Below are positions 47,172 through 64,000 of a stretch of 64,000 nt of DNA, one piece after another; within the stretch, counting starts at the first letter, position 1, and each line of letters starts with the position of its first letter. The notes beneath the pieces were generated by a model that had not been told where the DNA came from, searched no databases, and saw only the letters and a list, made by a program, of their open reading frames with translations. The stretch lies in IMG/VR virus record IMGVR_UViG_3300029911_000001, positions 1 through 64,000 of that record; one strand, written 5' to 3'. The position numbers and the translations under genes are program-made.

Positions 47172-48587
47172 TTACTCCGCGTCCTGAAAGTAGTCGAAGC
47201 TGGCTGCGGTACTGCGAACCTCATCCAGCGTGAAATCCTTCTTCAGTTCGCCGTTGAGGAACACGGTCTTGAGGTAGTTGCCGTAGCTGTCCTCTTCCGT
47301 GGTGTCGATAGTACGCCAGCCGCCGTCGCTGTTGAACAGGTTGAAGCGGCCACCGATGGATGCCTTCGAAGAATCCGTCTTCGGGTTCTTGAAGACCGGA
47401 CTCCACTGCCCTGCCCGGTTGATGGCCGAGCACTTGATAGCAAAGCGCATCGTGTCGCGGTTCTGCTGCTGCAACAGGGCACCGCCCATGCCGTAGCCCC
47501 AGTTGTCCATCGACCAACCCGACCGGGTGAGGGAGGAGTTGATGCGAAGGATGTTCTGATAGTTCACGCCGTCGCCCTGAATCGCACGAATCTGTGCCGG
47601 GAGAACCTTGTAGCCCTTGGCGTTGGTCTCGAAGCCGAACTTCTCCGCAACTGCGTTGAAGATGTCTTCGAGGACAACCACAGGGTCACCTGAGTCCGGG
47701 CGAAGCACGACAGTACCGTCCCGACGCAGAACCTTCTCACGAAGCTGGTTGCCGAAGATTTCAGCGACCGCGTTGTGCGTGTCGTAGCTGTCAACCACGC
47801 ACGCGAGAAGCGCAGTGGGCGACTTGTCGAGCATGTTCTCGTAGGCATCACGCTCGTTAGCCTGACCCCATGACGTGACCGTGCTGTGTTCCATAGCAGG
47901 GATAGAGAACCCCGGCATATCCTTGGCTCCGTAATAGTCACGTAGCAGTATGGCCGCTTCCATCGTGTCTGAGCCCATGAAGTTGACCAGATGTGCTGCT
48001 CCGCCGATAGCCGCCGATTCTTGCGAGGAGACGCCACGGGCTCCAAAGTCATGCAGCTTGAACGGCAAGCCAGCAGGAGTTCCGGTGCGAACCAAGTCCT
48101 TGCCAATTTCCTGCTTGATGTGCCATGACAGGGTGCCGACCGTGATGGGGTACCATGTTCCTCGGAGGATGATGGTCTCCGCCCAGTTTGTCAGCCAAGG
48201 AAACTCATCATCCGTGTTCTCAATGGTCAGCAGGGCGTTCTTCACAGAAACAACTGTACCCTCCGGCACCGCACGAATCTTGAGGGGAAGGCGACCGTCG
48301 TGCTTCTCCAGCAACCTGAGCCAACCCGTCGTATTGAATACCTTATCGGAGCCAAAGTGAGCCGCCGCAAATGCTTGAGCCTCGTCTACGTCTTCCTTAG
48401 TGAAGACCTTACCGACCAAGTAGGTCTTGAGGGTGTACTGAAGACCGAAGAACATCGTGTCCTTCCAAAAACCTCCGCGAGACATAAGGTGGGAGTAAAT
48501 AGTTCGAGTATCTGGGGGGTACTGAAAATGGTGGGAAAGCTTGTAACTGTCCGTTGTCAGTAGGGGGTTAACTCTCAGTTTTTGCAC
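47172..48587 (-). CDS. nadV: nicotinamide phosphoribosyltransferase (Nampt)
   Basis: TDSYKLSH..QYP, LHDFGARG, IPAMEHS, RPDSGDP, IQGDG and FAIKCS motifs. Confidence 0.95.
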   Translation of the reverse strand: MQKLRVNPLLTTDSYKLSHHFQYPPDTRTIYSHLMSRGGFWKDTMFFGLQYTLKTYLVGKVFTKEDVDEAQAFAAAHFGSDKVFNTTGWLRLLEKHDGRLPLKIRAVPEGTVVSVKNALLTIENTDDEFPWLTNWAETIILRGTWYPITVGTLSWHIKQEIGKDLVRTGTPAGLPFKLHDFGARGVSSQESAAIGGAAHLVNFMGSDTMEAAILLRDYYGAKDMPGFSIPAMEHSTVTSWGQANERDAYENMLDKSPTALLACVVDSYDTHNAVAEIFGNQLREKVLRRDGTVVLRPDSGDPVVVLEDIFNAVAEKFGFETNAKGYKVLPAQIRAIQGDGVNYQNILRINSSLTRSGWSMDNWGYGMGGALLQQQNRDTMRFAIKCSAINRAGQWSPVFKNPKTDSSKASIGGRFNLFNSDGGWRTIDTTEEDSYGNYLKTVFLNGELKKDFTLDEVRSTAASFDYFQDAE

Positions 48588-50162: not shown

Positions 50163-51164
50163 TTATTTCAATCCTTCCGCTGCGAGTTCCTTGGGCGTCA
50201 TGTGCGTGTAGGTGACGTTCATCCGGCCAACCTCGATGGTGTCCCACACGTACAGGCCGAAGTGCTTGTACACGACGGGGAAGACACTCTCCCGGTGCGT
50301 GTCGATGAGCAGTTCTGCCTTCATCTGGTCGATGGGAAACCACTTAACCTCTTCAATGTCATCGCCAGCAATCGCATTGAGCGAGGGTGACTCCGCCGCG
50401 AAGACGAGCGACTTGATTTGGTCGGGCTCCCCTTTCCACCGCCAGTCAGGGATGAGAGCAGAGCCGATGAACTGAGGTTCATTCACCACGAGGCTGGTCT
50501 CCTCCATGGCTTCACGGGCAGCGTCGTACTCGTAGCTGGGGGTGTAGGGCTCAGAGAAGCCACCGATGAACCGCCACTGCGTCTCACCCGGCTTGCGACC
50601 GAGCAGGAACAGCGTTTTGGTGTCGTCGTTCTCCGGCTTGTGGTAAATCACCACGTCCACCGTCGCCTTCACAGCAGGACGGATGTTGGTCATGGCGTAG
50701 ATGACGCCAGCACGGAACTCCGGGGACTCCATGACCGTGTTGGTAATTTTCGCACGGATGGTGGTGCCGCTGATGCCGTCGAGCGTGTTGGGGAGAGTCA
50801 GTTCAATCGGCTTGTACGCCCCATGGTAGTGCGGTACGAAAGAATCGCGAGAGCCGTACAGCGTCACGTCGCCGTAGTCCACTACGTCACGAATAGCCCT
50901 GTCCAAGTTCCGCGACCACGTTGCATCTTCCTTGGTGTCGGTGAGGGGGAAAATCATGAAGTCGGGATACGCAGCCTGAACCATCGCCTTGCGAGTCTCG
51001 AAGTCGAGGGGGTTGTTGTAGGTCGAGCCAATGGACTTCTGACCGAGGAACAGAATGACCTTGCTGTGCCGTGCCCTTACTTCATCGAACAGGGCTCTGT
51101 GTCCAGCGTGAAGAGCATCGACTTGGCAGCGTGCGACAAGAACGCCGTAGTTAGGCTTTTGCAT
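50163..51164 (-). CDS. nadM: bifunctional NMN adenylyltransferase / Nudix hydrolase
   Basis: ARCQ..LHAGH, NPL, ISGTTIR; Nudix box GGF...AAREAMEET; AGDD. Confidence 0.92.
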   Translation of the reverse strand: MQKPNYGVLVARCQVDALHAGHRALFDEVRARHSKVILFLGQKSIGSTYNNPLDFETRKAMVQAAYPDFMIFPLTDTKEDATWSRNLDRAIRDVVDYGDVTLYGSRDSFVPHYHGAYKPIELTLPNTLDGISGTTIRAKITNTVMESPEFRAGVIYAMTNIRPAVKATVDVVIYHKPENDDTKTLFLLGRKPGETQWRFIGGFSEPYTPSYEYDAAREAMEETSLVVNEPQFIGSALIPDWRWKGEPDQIKSLVFAAESPSLNAIAGDDIEEVKWFPIDQMKAELLIDTHRESVFPVVYKHFGLYVWDTIEVGRMNVTYTHMTPKELAAEGLK

Positions 51165-53067: not shown

Positions 53068-55002
53068 CTAATCATCATTAATTAATCCCAATTCCACAAG
53101 GAACCGGCTAGGAGCTACTCTACGTACATCAGCCCCCCGCTGTTCCATAGCATGAGCGCAAATAGTCAACTGGTCTTTAGCTCTAGTACAGGCGACGTAC
53201 CATAGCCTGCGCTCTTCCTCAATTTCCTCGGGAGATTGACAGAAGAGATGAGGTAAACTCCCCTCCACTACATTAGTCACATACACCCTTTGAAACTCTA
53301 GACCTTTAGCACTATGTATTGTGCTCACTGTTACTTGCCCTTCCTTGTCATCCTCGCGTGCCCGTTCAAGTGTAATCTGGAAGACCACATCTTCGGTAGT
53401 CATCTTCTGGTCTTCAGAGAGACCGCGAACAAGTTCCTTGAAGCGTTCGATGTTCTCCAGCTTCGACTTTATCTTGTCCGGTTCCTTCTTGTACTTGTTG
53501 TCGATGTACTTGTTGTAGTCCATCGCCGAGATGATTTTGTCGAGAGCCTGAACCGGATACTCTCGGTACCTCTGGATGTTCTCCATGGCAGACACAAACA
53601 AGCTGAGCTTGTCGATGATGTTGCAGCCTTGAATCAGGTCGCCATCATATTTCTCATTCGCCGTCTTGCGGATGCGTTCAAGAGCCACATCACCAACACC
53701 ACGTTTCGGTATGCTCACTGCACGAGCGAGAGCGGTGAAGTCTTTCGGGTTGGCGACAAGACGCAAGTAAGAGATAATATCGCGTACCTCTTCTGTCTGA
53801 AGTAAGCCGCGACCACCACGCACCACGTAAGGGATGCGGTAGCGAACGAGGGCGTTCTCAATGTCCATAATCTGACGAGCAGAGCGGACGAGAATCGCGT
53901 TGTCCTTGTATGCGATGTGACCCTTCTTCCGCATATTGTCCTTGTTGATTTCGGATGCGATGAGCAGGGCAATGTCGATGGGCAGAGAGGCTCGTGTTAG
54001 TTCAACCGTTCCCTTGTTCTCCTCGTCTCCACGGAAGGTGGACATACGAAGGGGCACCGTGTCCACCATCTTCGCCTGTATGTGATTGGCGAGGTAAACA
54101 ATGCGAGGAAGACTGCGGTGATTCTTAGCAATCCGGTAGAGAATGGGGGTGCGTCCTCTCCACCCCTCTGAGAACTCCTTGAGGAGATGGGGAGCCGAGC
54201 CGTTGAAGCCCATGATACTCTGAGAAATATCTCCTACCGTCATCAGGTTGGGGTTGTCGGGCGCGAGGAGCCCATTCACGACGCCCCACTGGGGAACAGA
54301 TAAATCCTGAGCCTCGTCCACCAGCACAATGGTAAATGCCTTATGCAACTGAGCTAACCACACCGGGTCTTGCTCACATCGGCGATTGAAGAAACACAAC
54401 ATATCCGAGAAGTCGAGGTTGTTGGCCCGATGTTTTTCTTCCTCATACAGCTTCCAGATTTGTAAGTCGAAGGGCTCCATCGCATGATAACCTGCGTGGG
54501 CGACAAGAGCCTGTTCATGCACATCATCGGTGTAGTCTACACAAAAGCCGAGGCCACGAGCGCGATGGTAGTTCACCTTCTCTAAAAATTTGTATACAAA
54601 TGAGCCAAGGCTAATACCCTTTTCTTTGACGTTGACCGTACGTTCCACAATCCGGCGAATCATCTGGCTCTGGTCGTAGTCATCCAGCGGCGTCACTCGC
54701 TCCTGTAAACCAAAACCAGCAGGGTTCTTACGAATCGCGGAGAGAGCAATGGAGTGGATGGTGGATACCTTAGGGGTGAAAAGTGAGTCAGGGGATATGT
54801 CCAACCGCTCTAAAAGCTCACCCGCCGCTTTATTGGTGAAGGTCACGCAACAAATTCGTCTAGGTTCCACCCCCTGAGCGATAAGCCACTTCACACGCTC
54901 TGTTAGTACACGGGTCTTCCCGGAACCCGCACCGGCGATGAGACAGGCAGGAGCACCTAGCGGGTGTTCAACCGCTGCCATCTGTTCTTCATTGAGTTGC
55001 AT
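53068..55002 (-). CDS. uvrD: UvrD/Rep/PcrA superfamily 1 helicase
   Basis: LNEEQ, AGAGSGKT, VTFTNKAA, VDEAQD, NHRS, TIHSAKGLEF and EERRLWYVACTRA motifs. Confidence 0.95.
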   Translation of the reverse strand: MQLNEEQMAAVEHPLGAPACLIAGAGSGKTRVLTERVKWLIAQGVEPRRICCVTFTNKAAGELLERLDISPDSLFTPKVSTIHSIALSAIRKNPAGFGLQERVTPLDDYDQSQMIRRIVERTVNVKEKGISLGSFVYKFLEKVNYHRARGLGFCVDYTDDVHEQALVAHAGYHAMEPFDLQIWKLYEEEKHRANNLDFSDMLCFFNRRCEQDPVWLAQLHKAFTIVLVDEAQDLSVPQWGVVNGLLAPDNPNLMTVGDISQSIMGFNGSAPHLLKEFSEGWRGRTPILYRIAKNHRSLPRIVYLANHIQAKMVDTVPLRMSTFRGDEENKGTVELTRASLPIDIALLIASEINKDNMRKKGHIAYKDNAILVRSARQIMDIENALVRYRIPYVVRGGRGLLQTEEVRDIISYLRLVANPKDFTALARAVSIPKRGVGDVALERIRKTANEKYDGDLIQGCNIIDKLSLFVSAMENIQRYREYPVQALDKIISAMDYNKYIDNKYKKEPDKIKSKLENIERFKELVRGLSEDQKMTTEDVVFQITLERAREDDKEGQVTVSTIHSAKGLEFQRVYVTNVVEGSLPHLFCQSPEEIEEERRLWYVACTRAKDQLTICAHAMEQRGADVRRVAPSRFLVELGLINDD

Positions 55003-61431: not shown

Positions 61432-61512
61432 AAAATAGTACCTTCCGTTAAGGATGTTCTGTGTCCGGTACACTGTGTAAAACCGGGTTGTAGCTTTCTT
61501 ATAGTTTCTCAT
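61426..61512 (-). pseudogene. truncated GIY-YIG endonuclease (28 aa)
   Basis: MRNYKKATTRFYTVYRTQNILNGRYYFG*; upstream promoter/hairpin retained. Confidence 0.75.
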
Positions 61513-61577
61513 GAACCTATCAACCTCTCAGATGCTGAGGAGCTAACCTCTACTAAAGAGGTTGATAGTCACGAAAG

Positions 61578-61658
61578 AGCTACGAGAGGGATTCGAACCC
61601 CCGGTGTTTGTATGCCGCATTACAAGTGCGGTGCATTCGACCACTCAGCCATCGTAGC
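61578..61658 (-). tRNA. tRNA-Thr(UGU) with a 12-nt variable region
   Basis: GCTACGA/TCGTAGC acceptor; CCGCA-CTTGTAA-TGCGG; GGGGG-TTCGAAT-CCCTC; no encoded CCA. Confidence 0.85.
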
Positions 61659-61942: not shown

Positions 61943-62251
61943 TTACTTATACTTCGGGAAGAATCCAAAGTTCTTGGGGTACTCTTCTCTCGGTATGAAA
62001 ACGATTGCAACTTCTTGTCCGTTCAACGTGGACTCGGTGATGACTTGATGCTTCGGCACTTCCTTCGCCTTCTCGAACTCCTCGTCGGTTACCTTGCACA
62101 CAACCTTGGCGAAGGACGTTTGCAGCCACTTGACCATATCCGGGTCGGTGGGGAAGTTCAGGTAGAGCGACAGAGGCCCGTGTGCTGCGGCCACGATGGC
62201 GTTACCTACCGGGATGGAGCCCTTCACCAAAACGTACATCTTCAATTTCAT
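61943..62251 (-). CDS. peptidyl-tRNA hydrolase, PTH2-like
   Basis: KMYVLV...G....AAH....W.....KVVCKV; true start at 62251 (the longer ORF overlaps tRNAs). Confidence 0.7.
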   Translation of the reverse strand: MKLKMYVLVKGSIPVGNAIVAAAHGPLSLYLNFPTDPDMVKWLQTSFAKVVCKVTDEEFEKAKEVPKHQVITESTLNGQEVAIVFIPREEYPKNFGFFPKYK

Positions 62252-62340
62252 GCTGGCCTCGTGTATGAGTCCGATAGGGCTCATTGGACTCATATATGAA
62301 GCACTAAAGCCGTTAGTGCTCCATATATGGGACTTTATCT

Positions 62341-62413
62341 TGGTGGGCACTTCGGGAGTTGAACCCGAATCACCGTTTCCCTTGGCAGGGTGCCACGGTG
62401 AACCAATGTGCCC
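62341..62413 (-). ncRNA. tRNA-like RNA without a D arm
   Basis: GGGCAC/GTGCCC-ACCA end; TTCGGG-TTCAACT-CCCGAA T arm; single long arm TCACCGT/ACGGTGA. Confidence 0.65.
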
Positions 62414-62419
62414 GAATCT

Positions 62420-62506
62420 TGGTTGGGGAGGCAGGATTCGAACCTGCAATGAGCTTACGCTCGGGGGCTTCAAAGGCCCTTGACCTACCATTGGTACGAC
62501 TCCCCA
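62420..62506 (-). tRNA. tRNA-Gln(UUG) with a long variable arm
   Basis: TGGGGAG/CTCCCCA-ACCA; GGGC-CTTTGAA-GCCC; variable hairpin GAGC-GTAA-GCTC. Confidence 0.8.
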
Positions 62507-62748: not shown

Positions 62749-63348
62749 TCACTCCCAGTACAGCCTATAGTTCGTTCCGTATACTTCGTTCAACTTCTTG
62801 AAGAAGGCATCGGTCTTTATCTTGACCATGAAATCGTCACCCTTGGCGACGACGCCTTCCCACACTGGATACTTTCCGCTGCGGACATCATCAACGAACT
62901 GCTTGTTGAGGTTGCCCTCGTAAACCACTTCAGCCGCGTATGGCAGGTCTCCGTACTGCTTGAGAAACTGCCGGGGCGACATCATCCCCTTCTTGAACAG
63001 GTACACATCGAACAAGCGAAGCTGCTTAGGCTCCCCCGGCGTATGCACACCCGCGAAACTTGAGTCCCCGAAGAACTCTGTGAAGACCGTGGTCCTCTGG
63101 CAGTTCCGGTCGTAGTCCTTCACCCGGCGAGTCAACTCATCTGCCATGGTATCCATGAAGACCGGAATCGCTTCACCGAAGACCGGGTTGCTCTTGTCGA
63201 ACAACTCATGTCGGGTACCAAACTTGAACCAACCCTTCTTGGGGTTCCACTCCCAACGAAGGTTCGAGCCATCGTACTTGTAGAAAGCGATGCACTGCTT
63301 ACCTAGAGGGGCTTTGGAACTTCCTTCGATACTTGGGTACTGCTCCAT
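62749..63348 (-). CDS. ATP-dependent RNA ligase family protein
   Basis: Nucleotidyltransferase motifs KYDGSN, EFFG, LFDV, EGVVAK and KIK. Confidence 0.8.
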   Translation of the reverse strand: MEQYPSIEGSSKAPLGKQCIAFYKYDGSNLRWEWNPKKGWFKFGTRHELFDKSNPVFGEAIPVFMDTMADELTRRVKDYDRNCQRTTVFTEFFGDSSFAGVHTPGEPKQLRLFDVYLFKKGMMSPRQFLKQYGDLPYAAEVVYEGNLNKQFVDDVRSGKYPVWEGVVAKGDDFMVKIKTDAFFKKLNEVYGTNYRLYWE

Positions 63349-63917: not shown

Positions 63918-64000
63918 TGGAGCTAGGTGAGGGACTCGAACCCTCGGTGTTTGTATACCGCTTTACGAAAGCGGTGCCGTCGCCACTGAGCCAACCTAGC
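63918..64000 (-). tRNA. tRNA-Thr(CGU) with a 12-nt variable region
   Basis: GCTAGGT/ACCTAGC-TCCA; CCGCT-TTCGTAA-AGCGG; 5' end coincides with the window edge. Confidence 0.85.

Follow-up and report, generated by a model that had tools for sequence, protein, structure and literature searches.

What kind of entity is a gene that keeps the top half of a tRNA, ends in an encoded CCA, and carries a hairpin where the D and anticodon arms should be? The question is posed by a 73-nt element (62341–62413, minus strand) that lies among tRNA and RNA-repair genes of a huge phage. The window – the whole 64,000-nt stretch of DNA that was analysed – comprises positions 1–64,000 of an IMG/VR huge-phage record of 231,108 bp, estimated to be 74% complete. 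The same sequence is present in many peat metagenome runs, and the element itself is identical in IMG/VR, JGI and Logan contigs, the last from many peat runs, which indicates that the sequence is real. A critical issue is whether such an element still decodes, whether it is what remains of a tRNA gene, or whether selection maintains it in some other role. A preliminary description had favoured the last of these, proposing that the element is a tRNA mimic.

Results

Structure of the element

Read on the minus strand, the element folds exactly as the preliminary description had claimed: the minimum free energy (MFE) structure is that structure, at -35.7 kcal/mol. It accounts for 58% of the ensemble (z = -3.2; none of 200 shuffles is as stable), and its pair probabilities range from 0.71 to 1.0. 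The 5′ strand of the acceptor stem, GGGCAC (nt 1–6; 62408–62413), pairs with GUGCCC at 62345–62350 with a probability of 0.99 and is followed by the linker AUUGGU (nt 7–12; 62402–62407), in which we take a U to occupy the position of U8 and the GG to be capable of acting as G18–G19. The place of the D and anticodon arms (nt 13–44; 62370–62401) is taken by a 7-bp helix (UCACCGU/ACGGUGA), an internal loop (GGCA/AA) and a terminal hairpin (CCCU-GCCA-AGGG). The T arm (nt 45–63; 62351–62369) has a 6-bp stem, UUCGGG/CCCGAA, and a loop, UUCAACU, that fits the T54-Psi55-C56-R57-A58 consensus; the molecule is completed (nt 64–73; 62341–62350) by the 3′ acceptor strand GUGCCC, a discriminator A and the encoded CCA.

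The top half of this structure is without blemish. Six acceptor pairs and six T-stem pairs, all of them Watson-Crick, form a 12-bp stack, the T loop keeps to consensus and the ACCA end is in place. A scan of the 231-kb genome, on both strands, for NCCA combined with a 5-bp T stem, the T-loop consensus and an acceptor stem in which 6 or all 7 pairs form recovered only ARAGORN-called tRNAs, the tmRNA and the element. Since the pattern is otherwise confined to known tRNAs and the tmRNA, the top half of the element is no chance match.

The middle hairpin, folded alone, reaches -16.0 kcal/mol against -10.4 ± 2.55 for dinucleotide shuffles, 2.45% of 2000 of which are as stable; its stability is modestly unusual (p about 0.025, post hoc). 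No second copy of this core hairpin was found in the genome. That the locus might be a repeat or mobile element was rejected, given that the core hairpin and a 17-bp hairpin further downstream are each single-copy in the genome.

Relationship to tRNA

The element is not a working tRNA and is probably unable to decode. Against the Rfam tRNA family (RF00005) it scores 19.4 bits (E = 1 when 2.6 kb were searched), short of the gathering score of 29. Only in the acceptor and T arms is the alignment confident; elsewhere it would require a D loop of 2 nt and an anticodon loop of 3 nt, neither of which is feasible. A D arm (3–4-bp stem, loop of at least 7 nt) is absent: the sole D-like pairing is GGU/ACC, with that 2-nt loop, and the MFE fold leaves AUUGGU unpaired. 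So too is an anticodon arm (5-bp stem, 7-nt loop), in place of which the MFE fold has a 4-bp stem and the tetraloop GCCA. ARAGORN made no call on the element in bacterial, intron (-i) or tmRNA (-m) mode; at 80% stringency it drew an implausible tRNA with a four-base anticodon, and in the permissive metazoan-mitochondrial mode (-mt) it reported a 73-nt 'D-loop mtRNA-Gly(gcc)' with 2 Watson-Crick pairs in the anticodon stem. The thermodynamic ensemble instead forms the slipped 4-bp stem and tetraloop, with a probability of 0.96–0.97. These features leave unsupported one of the roles proposed at the outset, that of a decoy for anticodon nucleases, there being no 7-nt anticodon loop and no anticodon-like reading other than this GCC with its two stem pairs.

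Judged by its sequence, the element is clearly tRNA-derived. The acceptor GGGCAC/GUGCCC-A together with the T loop GGUUCAANUCC has 132 matches in viral and GTDB contigs, every one an ARAGORN tRNA: 63 are tRNA-Val and 44 tRNA-Leu, followed by Met, Ile, Phe and others, with one lacking an isotype. Aligned to these tRNAs, the element displays recognisable remnants of a D loop (UUGGUU), an anticodon loop and a variable region. In the best alignments, and relative to a canonical tRNA, it has lost about 5 nt in the D region and gained about 2 nt in the variable region, length shifts that point to a rewritten class-I tRNA gene of near-normal length rather than a truncated fragment. A D-armless, tRNA-like gene with an encoded CCA, as the preliminary description had it, is borne out. 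No ancestor tRNA sharing the element's acceptor was found in 16 related records, BLAST against GenBank phages returned ordinary tRNA matches only, and we found no phage RNA of this architecture described in the literature.

Two further candidates were rejected. An intron-containing tRNA is contradicted by the negative result in ARAGORN -i mode and by inspection, which revealed no bulge-helix-bulge that would leave a U33-containing 7-nt loop. An attP-like partial tRNA is ruled out because both acceptor strands are present.

Genomic setting

The genes around the element all lie on the minus strand, in the order RNA-ligase-like gene, 77-aa ORF, tRNA-Gln(UUG), element, two hairpins, PTH2-type peptidyl-tRNA hydrolase gene, 89-aa ORF and tRNA-Thr(UGU). 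The ligase-like protein (62749–63348; 199 aa) carries a KYDG motif and matches PHROG 548 'RNA ligase' (E = 7e-9); Pfam and PDB sequence searches gave no match. The tRNA-Gln (62420–62506; recognised by ARAGORN and Rfam) ends at 62420, and from its CCA to the element there is a 6-nt spacer, AGAUUC (62414–62419), so the reported position 6 nt downstream of tRNA-Gln is correct and the element occupies a normal tRNA slot. AGAUUC also follows tRNA-Val(UAC) elsewhere in the genome; this leader and the A/U-rich trailer of the element (AGAUAAAG) both resemble in style the flanks of real tRNAs in the genome. Neither a sigma-70-like promoter nor a terminator was found between the element and tRNA-Gln or PTH2.

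The PTH2 gene (61943–62251; 102 aa) is preceded by a ribosome-binding site, GAGG, at 62257–62260. Its match to Pfam PF01981 (E = 0.0016) falls below the cut-off; a profile of 7 homologues matches the archaeal Pth2 2zv3 (E = 1.3e-5). In jumbo phages a setting of tRNAs, RNA ligase and PTH2 has been presented as a counter-measure against tRNA attack (PMC7824862), and the neighbourhood of the element matches that setting.

Between the element and PTH2 lies the near-perfect 17-bp hairpin (CAUAUAUGGAGCACUAA / UUAGUGCUUCAUAUAUG; 62291–62329, minus strand), which has no U tail (z = -3.9 for a 101-nt stretch). It is unique in the genome, is absent from the closest relative (L225), and might serve either as a site for RNase III or as a palindrome bound by a protein. 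Further along (62277–62287, minus strand) is CCAAUGAGCCC, an inverted copy of nt 1–11 of the element with one mismatch. In the MFE fold of a 271-nt precursor, pairing of CCAAUGAGCCC with the 5′ strand of the element beats the acceptor stem; the complementarity is probably due to chance (p about 0.1 after multiple testing, by our estimate).

The 231-kb record contains 32 tRNAs and a permuted tmRNA (ARAGORN). No gene for a CCA-adding enzyme was found in these 231 kb (74% complete); the absence fits with the fact that 30 of the 32 tRNAs, like the element, have an encoded CCA. The two CCA-less tRNAs, Thr-UGU and a second Tyr, each stand directly before the same 20-mer, TTTCGTGACTAYCRACCTCT (61557–61576, minus strand; G000:C1:187256–187275 of the full record, plus strand), and peat-run contigs of other organisms also align, with indels, to 61509–61577. 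A 9-nt unpaired extension of the variable loop, AUACAAACA, characterises tRNA-Thr(UGU) and tRNA-Thr(CGU), the genes of which lie at 61577–61658 and 63918–64000 (both minus strand); it is also found in a relative (L225:1317–1400). Stop-codon recoding in part of the phage genes is hinted at by an amber-suppressor tRNA located beyond the window (G000:C1:67323–67396, minus strand), which has the anticodon CUA and an encoded CCA. The tmRNA, in two pieces (G000:C1:71374–71774; locus L091:216–483), matches Rfam RF04321 with 85 bits, encodes the tag ANSNVALPIAA and has G3:U70; no SmpB gene was found in the 231 kb. Elsewhere in the window are NAD salvage genes (47172–48587 and 50163–51164, both minus strand), for a NAMPT/NAPRTase-family enzyme and a NUDIX-domain protein whose additional cytidylyltransferase-like match is weak and falls short of the cut-off. 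Both genes are situated upstream of that for a UvrD-like helicase (53068–55002).

Distribution and conservation

A covariance model built from the single element sequence and its fold was used to search 20 viral loci containing ligase and PTH2 homologues, 18 whole related huge-phage records (36–463 kb), 36 metagenome loci and 6 contigs found via PTH2 homologues. The sole real matches were 100% identical copies, the remainder being ordinary tRNAs or pieces of larger tRNAs and tmRNAs. IMG/VR was also scanned with two patterns, the T arm with ACCA and the core hairpin; these scans found two identical contigs and nothing else. The preliminary description had named two findings as refuting it together, a lack of homologues with compensatory changes and a lack of processed RNA. 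The first holds for the loci and records searched, where identical copies were all that turned up; as to the second, no RNA run was found among the runs that contain the locus. As a positive control, the neighbouring tRNA-Gln proved to be conserved in four diverged phages (62420–62506, minus strand, of the window; L003:5106–5194; L083:3523–3610; L225:908–996) with 5 compensatory pairs. The 4-bp variable arm of tRNA-Gln(UUG) is class-II-like, GAGC-GUAA-GCUC, and the five compensatory pairs lie elsewhere in the molecule.

The corresponding sites are empty in the closest relatives whose copy of the region is intact. In L225, whose ligase is 86% identical, the CCA of tRNA-Gln is followed by 6 nt and an ATG, and the called PTH2 start comes 17 nt after the CCA; in L003 (ligase 74% identical) an ORF directly follows tRNA-Gln and the element is absent. 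From these empty syntenic sites it follows that a 168-nt block (62252–62419, minus strand) – the element plus the two hairpins, all missing at the same place in L225 – is specific to the element's lineage. The intermediate relative L083 (84% nucleotide identity) ends 7 nt after tRNA-Gln, and the contig L226 starts 79 nt before PTH2, too short to span the site. L225 also carries, directly after its tRNA-Thr, a class-II aminoacyl-tRNA synthetase gene (L225:1415–2650; tRNA-synt_2b and HGTP_anticodon domains) that has no counterpart at that place in the window's phage.

The PTH2 genes of relatives adjoin ordinary tRNAs or none, and the element is absent beside them, so the adjacency of element and PTH2 is explained by the gene cluster. 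The idea that the element is a ligand of PTH2 is accordingly left with a genuine PTH2 gene, and with relatives whose PTH2 genes have no such element.

All copies of the element belong to one nearly clonal population, with 99.99–100% identity over 8 kb. Contigs of four further peat runs contain no variants within the element, and PTH2 gene calls that read through it are protein-identical in 12 contigs. Near-clonal, invariant copies of this kind offer no variation by which selection might be judged.

Other aberrant tRNA-like elements

The element is not the only oddity among tRNA-like sequences. The same genome holds three more (G000:C1:146097–146200, 146375–146432 and 144025–144157; loci L089 and L090): an Asn(GUU)-like one, right after tRNA-Asp, with a 42-nt insert in the D region and a GCCA end; one of 58 nt without an anticodon arm; and one of about 115 nt with an expanded D region. 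Of 274 CCA-ended top-half elements counted across the relatives' loci, 16 unique ones, the present one included, are missed by ARAGORN. Some of the missed elements resemble suppressor or otherwise odd tRNAs. Most like the present element is an anticodon-armless element of 62 nt with G3:U70 (L033:877–938, the same as G002:C1:307457–307518), which is confined to its own genome and not conserved in other records. Related phages are rich in tRNAs, with up to about 70 tRNA matches each among the matches listed. With other aberrant tRNA-like elements present in both genome and relatives, and with a hairpin whose p of about 0.025 is post hoc, the contention that novel pairing argues against decay is weak.

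Discussion

The explanation that we prefer, and to which we give somewhat better than even chances, is that the element is a young, lineage-specific, non-decoding derivative of a class-I tRNA gene that is probably still matured like a tRNA. It is not a proven new kind of RNA, and most likely it is a recently remodelled tRNA copy rather than a conserved functional RNA family. As to decay versus design, the odds are near even, leaning to a remnant.

The element's top half is a type shared chiefly by tRNA-Val and tRNA-Leu, along with a small number of tRNA-Ile, and the element occupies a normal tRNA position in the phage's cluster of tRNA and RNA-repair genes. Its D region would have shrunk by about 5 nt and its anticodon stem would have lost its pairing; leftover sequence from the D and variable regions would then pair as the 7-bp helix and close the lower limb as a hairpin, so that the RNA cannot decode. 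The element is presumably co-transcribed with tRNA-Gln and the PTH2 gene. Bacterial RNase P and 3′-trimming enzymes read the acceptor/T helix, the T loop, G+1 and A73-CCA; because the 12-bp coaxial acceptor/T helix, the canonical T loop, G+1 and A73-CCA have all been kept, a 5′ cut by RNase P and trimming to the encoded CCA are probable. The product would be a stable 73-nt non-decoding RNA with, at most, a 'punctuation' role in processing, marking off tRNA-Gln from the PTH2 mRNA. Rapid birth and death of tRNA genes in tRNA-rich huge phages would account for its origin.

With tRNA pseudogenes the element has in common its tRNA ancestry, the loss of canonical arms and the lack of conservation. 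What speaks against a remnant is that the damage is not spread over the whole gene: all change falls within nt 7–44, where 9 of 9 canonical D and anticodon pairs are gone, while in the top half all 12 pairs, the T loop and ACCA are perfect. We estimate, post hoc, that about five independent events placed at random would all have fallen in the middle with a probability of about 0.04, or about 0.16 when the four aberrant elements of the genome are corrected for. In addition, 97.5% of dinucleotide shuffles are less stable than the new hairpin (again post hoc). A further argument – that phages shed useless DNA, yet the element is identical across many peat samples – says little, since the copies come from one nearly clonal population.

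A top half left intact above a rewritten lower half is also what might be expected had selection favoured a trans-acting mimic, a molecule whose CCA-ended minihelix and elbow titrate or distract a protein that recognises the acceptor/T domain and not the anticodon. Its target could be a toxin of host defence, acting on tRNA 3′ ends or acceptor stems by modification or cleavage, or else an enzyme of phage or host such as PTH2, EF-Tu or a synthetase. The stability of the middle hairpin beyond chance, a CCA encoded as in functional tRNAs, and a place among RNA-repair genes (RNA ligase, PTH2) in the setting of PMC7824862 are consistent with such a mimic. We nonetheless judge it unlikely: the lack of any homologue found means that there is no covariation, the closest relatives (L225, L003) do without the element, no lineage-specific partner protein accompanies it, and the similar aberrant elements of relatives are not conserved either. 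The broader conjecture that huge phages make anticodon-less 'top-half' tRNA mimics as a class, as decoys or sponges for acceptor-end defence enzymes, with the element as one example, is more doubtful still. We are more sceptical again of a role in cis, in which the element would be a leader of the PTH2 mRNA whose 5′ strand, GGGCACAUUGG, has two possible partners, the element's 3′ strand and CCAAUGAGCCC, the choice between them setting PTH2 processing or translation. The alternative pairing, of 10 bp, does win in the precursor fold, the 168-nt block stands directly before the PTH2 start with CCAAUGAGCCC just upstream of the ribosome-binding site, and the 17-bp hairpin lies between. However, the complementarity is not significant after multiple testing, the PTH2 genes of relatives work without such a leader, and co-transcriptional folding would favour the tRNA-like form, which would be complete before its competitor is made.

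Taking the mitochondrial-mode ARAGORN call at face value would make the element a genuine decoding D-armless tRNA-Gly(GCC) with the loop CUGCCAA, in which U33 and A37 are suitably placed around GCC. This we regard as very improbable: -mt mode is permissive by design, the two-pair anticodon stem gives way to the slipped stem and tetraloop, and the lower limb would, by our count, exceed the proper length by about 3 layers. Its discriminator, A73, does not match the U73 of the phage's three tRNA-Gly, which have the acceptor GCGGGAU, and a canonical tRNA-Gly(GCC) already exists at 143173–143247. Least credible, and largely refuted, are the ideas that the element is a tmRNA-like tRNA domain standing alone or that it binds Ro in the manner of a Y RNA; the preliminary description had entertained both a tmRNA-like molecule and a Ro ligand. 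The outline – acceptor, short D-loop analogue, long helix, T arm, ACCA – and the typical T loop do recall the former. Against it, the third acceptor pair (nt 3 with nt 67) is G3:C70, so that the alanine determinant G3:U70 is missing, and the element has no Rfam tmRNA match, in a phage that has a complete permuted tmRNA of its own and in whose 231 kb SmpB was not found. Y RNAs (YrlA) have their free ends in the Ro-binding stem, not in an acceptor, and a six-frame search of the 231 kb (74% complete) for PF05731/TROVE gave no match at E ≤ 1. Taken as a whole, then, the preliminary interpretation survives as a tRNA-derived, D-armless gene with a CCA; its argument against decay is weak, and the specific functions that it proposed are not supported.

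If the element is only a remodelled tRNA copy, it cleanly captures how tRNA genes come and go in huge phages rich in tRNAs. It then also carries a warning for annotation, in that about 5% of the CCA-ended top-half elements in these phages are missed by ARAGORN. Should it be true that selection keeps the top half, the phage would make a non-decoding tRNA mimic, with a bearing on phage counter-defence against tRNA-directed systems.

Comparison with known systems

Several known systems resemble the element in part. The tRNA-like domain of tmRNA has the same order of acceptor, reduced D loop, long helix, T arm and ACCA; the element differs from it in lacking G3:U70, an mRNA-like part, a match to Rfam and, in the 231 kb, a gene for SmpB, and in sharing its genome with a separate, true tmRNA. 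D-armless mitochondrial tRNAs likewise have a short unpaired loop for a D arm, and ARAGORN -mt accepts the element on these terms. They keep, however, a 5-bp anticodon stem, a 7-nt loop and a variable region, whereas the element has lost that stem and its 7-bp helix abuts the T arm with no variable loop. Allo-tRNAs are reported to occur in certain bacteria and their phages (PMC5389517) and have a 12-bp acceptor/T stack divided other than 7/5 – 8/4 or 9/3, where the element has 6/6. Allo-tRNAs retain D and anticodon arms and decode; the element does not.

Comparable, too, are RNAs that are processed like tRNAs and do not decode. The stable 'species 1/2' RNAs of the T4 tRNA cluster, which we take to be processed, non-decoding tRNA-like RNAs, are one example. 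A second parallel is mascRNA from MALAT1 (PMC8457004), which has a top half recognisable by RNase P and 3′-end enzymes, no usable anticodon loop, and a position within a longer transcript. Both differ from the element in being conserved and experimentally processed; the element, of which only identical copies were found, shares no sequence homology with either. Its lineage-specific character has a parallel in tRNA pseudogenes and non-canonical tRNA genes within prokaryotic arrays (PMC9897764), which, like the element, are tRNA-derived, have lost arms, score below threshold, are restricted to particular lineages and stand beside intact tRNAs. From these the element is set apart by its full length of 73 nt, by flawless acceptor strands, T arm and CCA, and by a stable hairpin – rather than random sequence or a truncation – in place of the arms that were lost.
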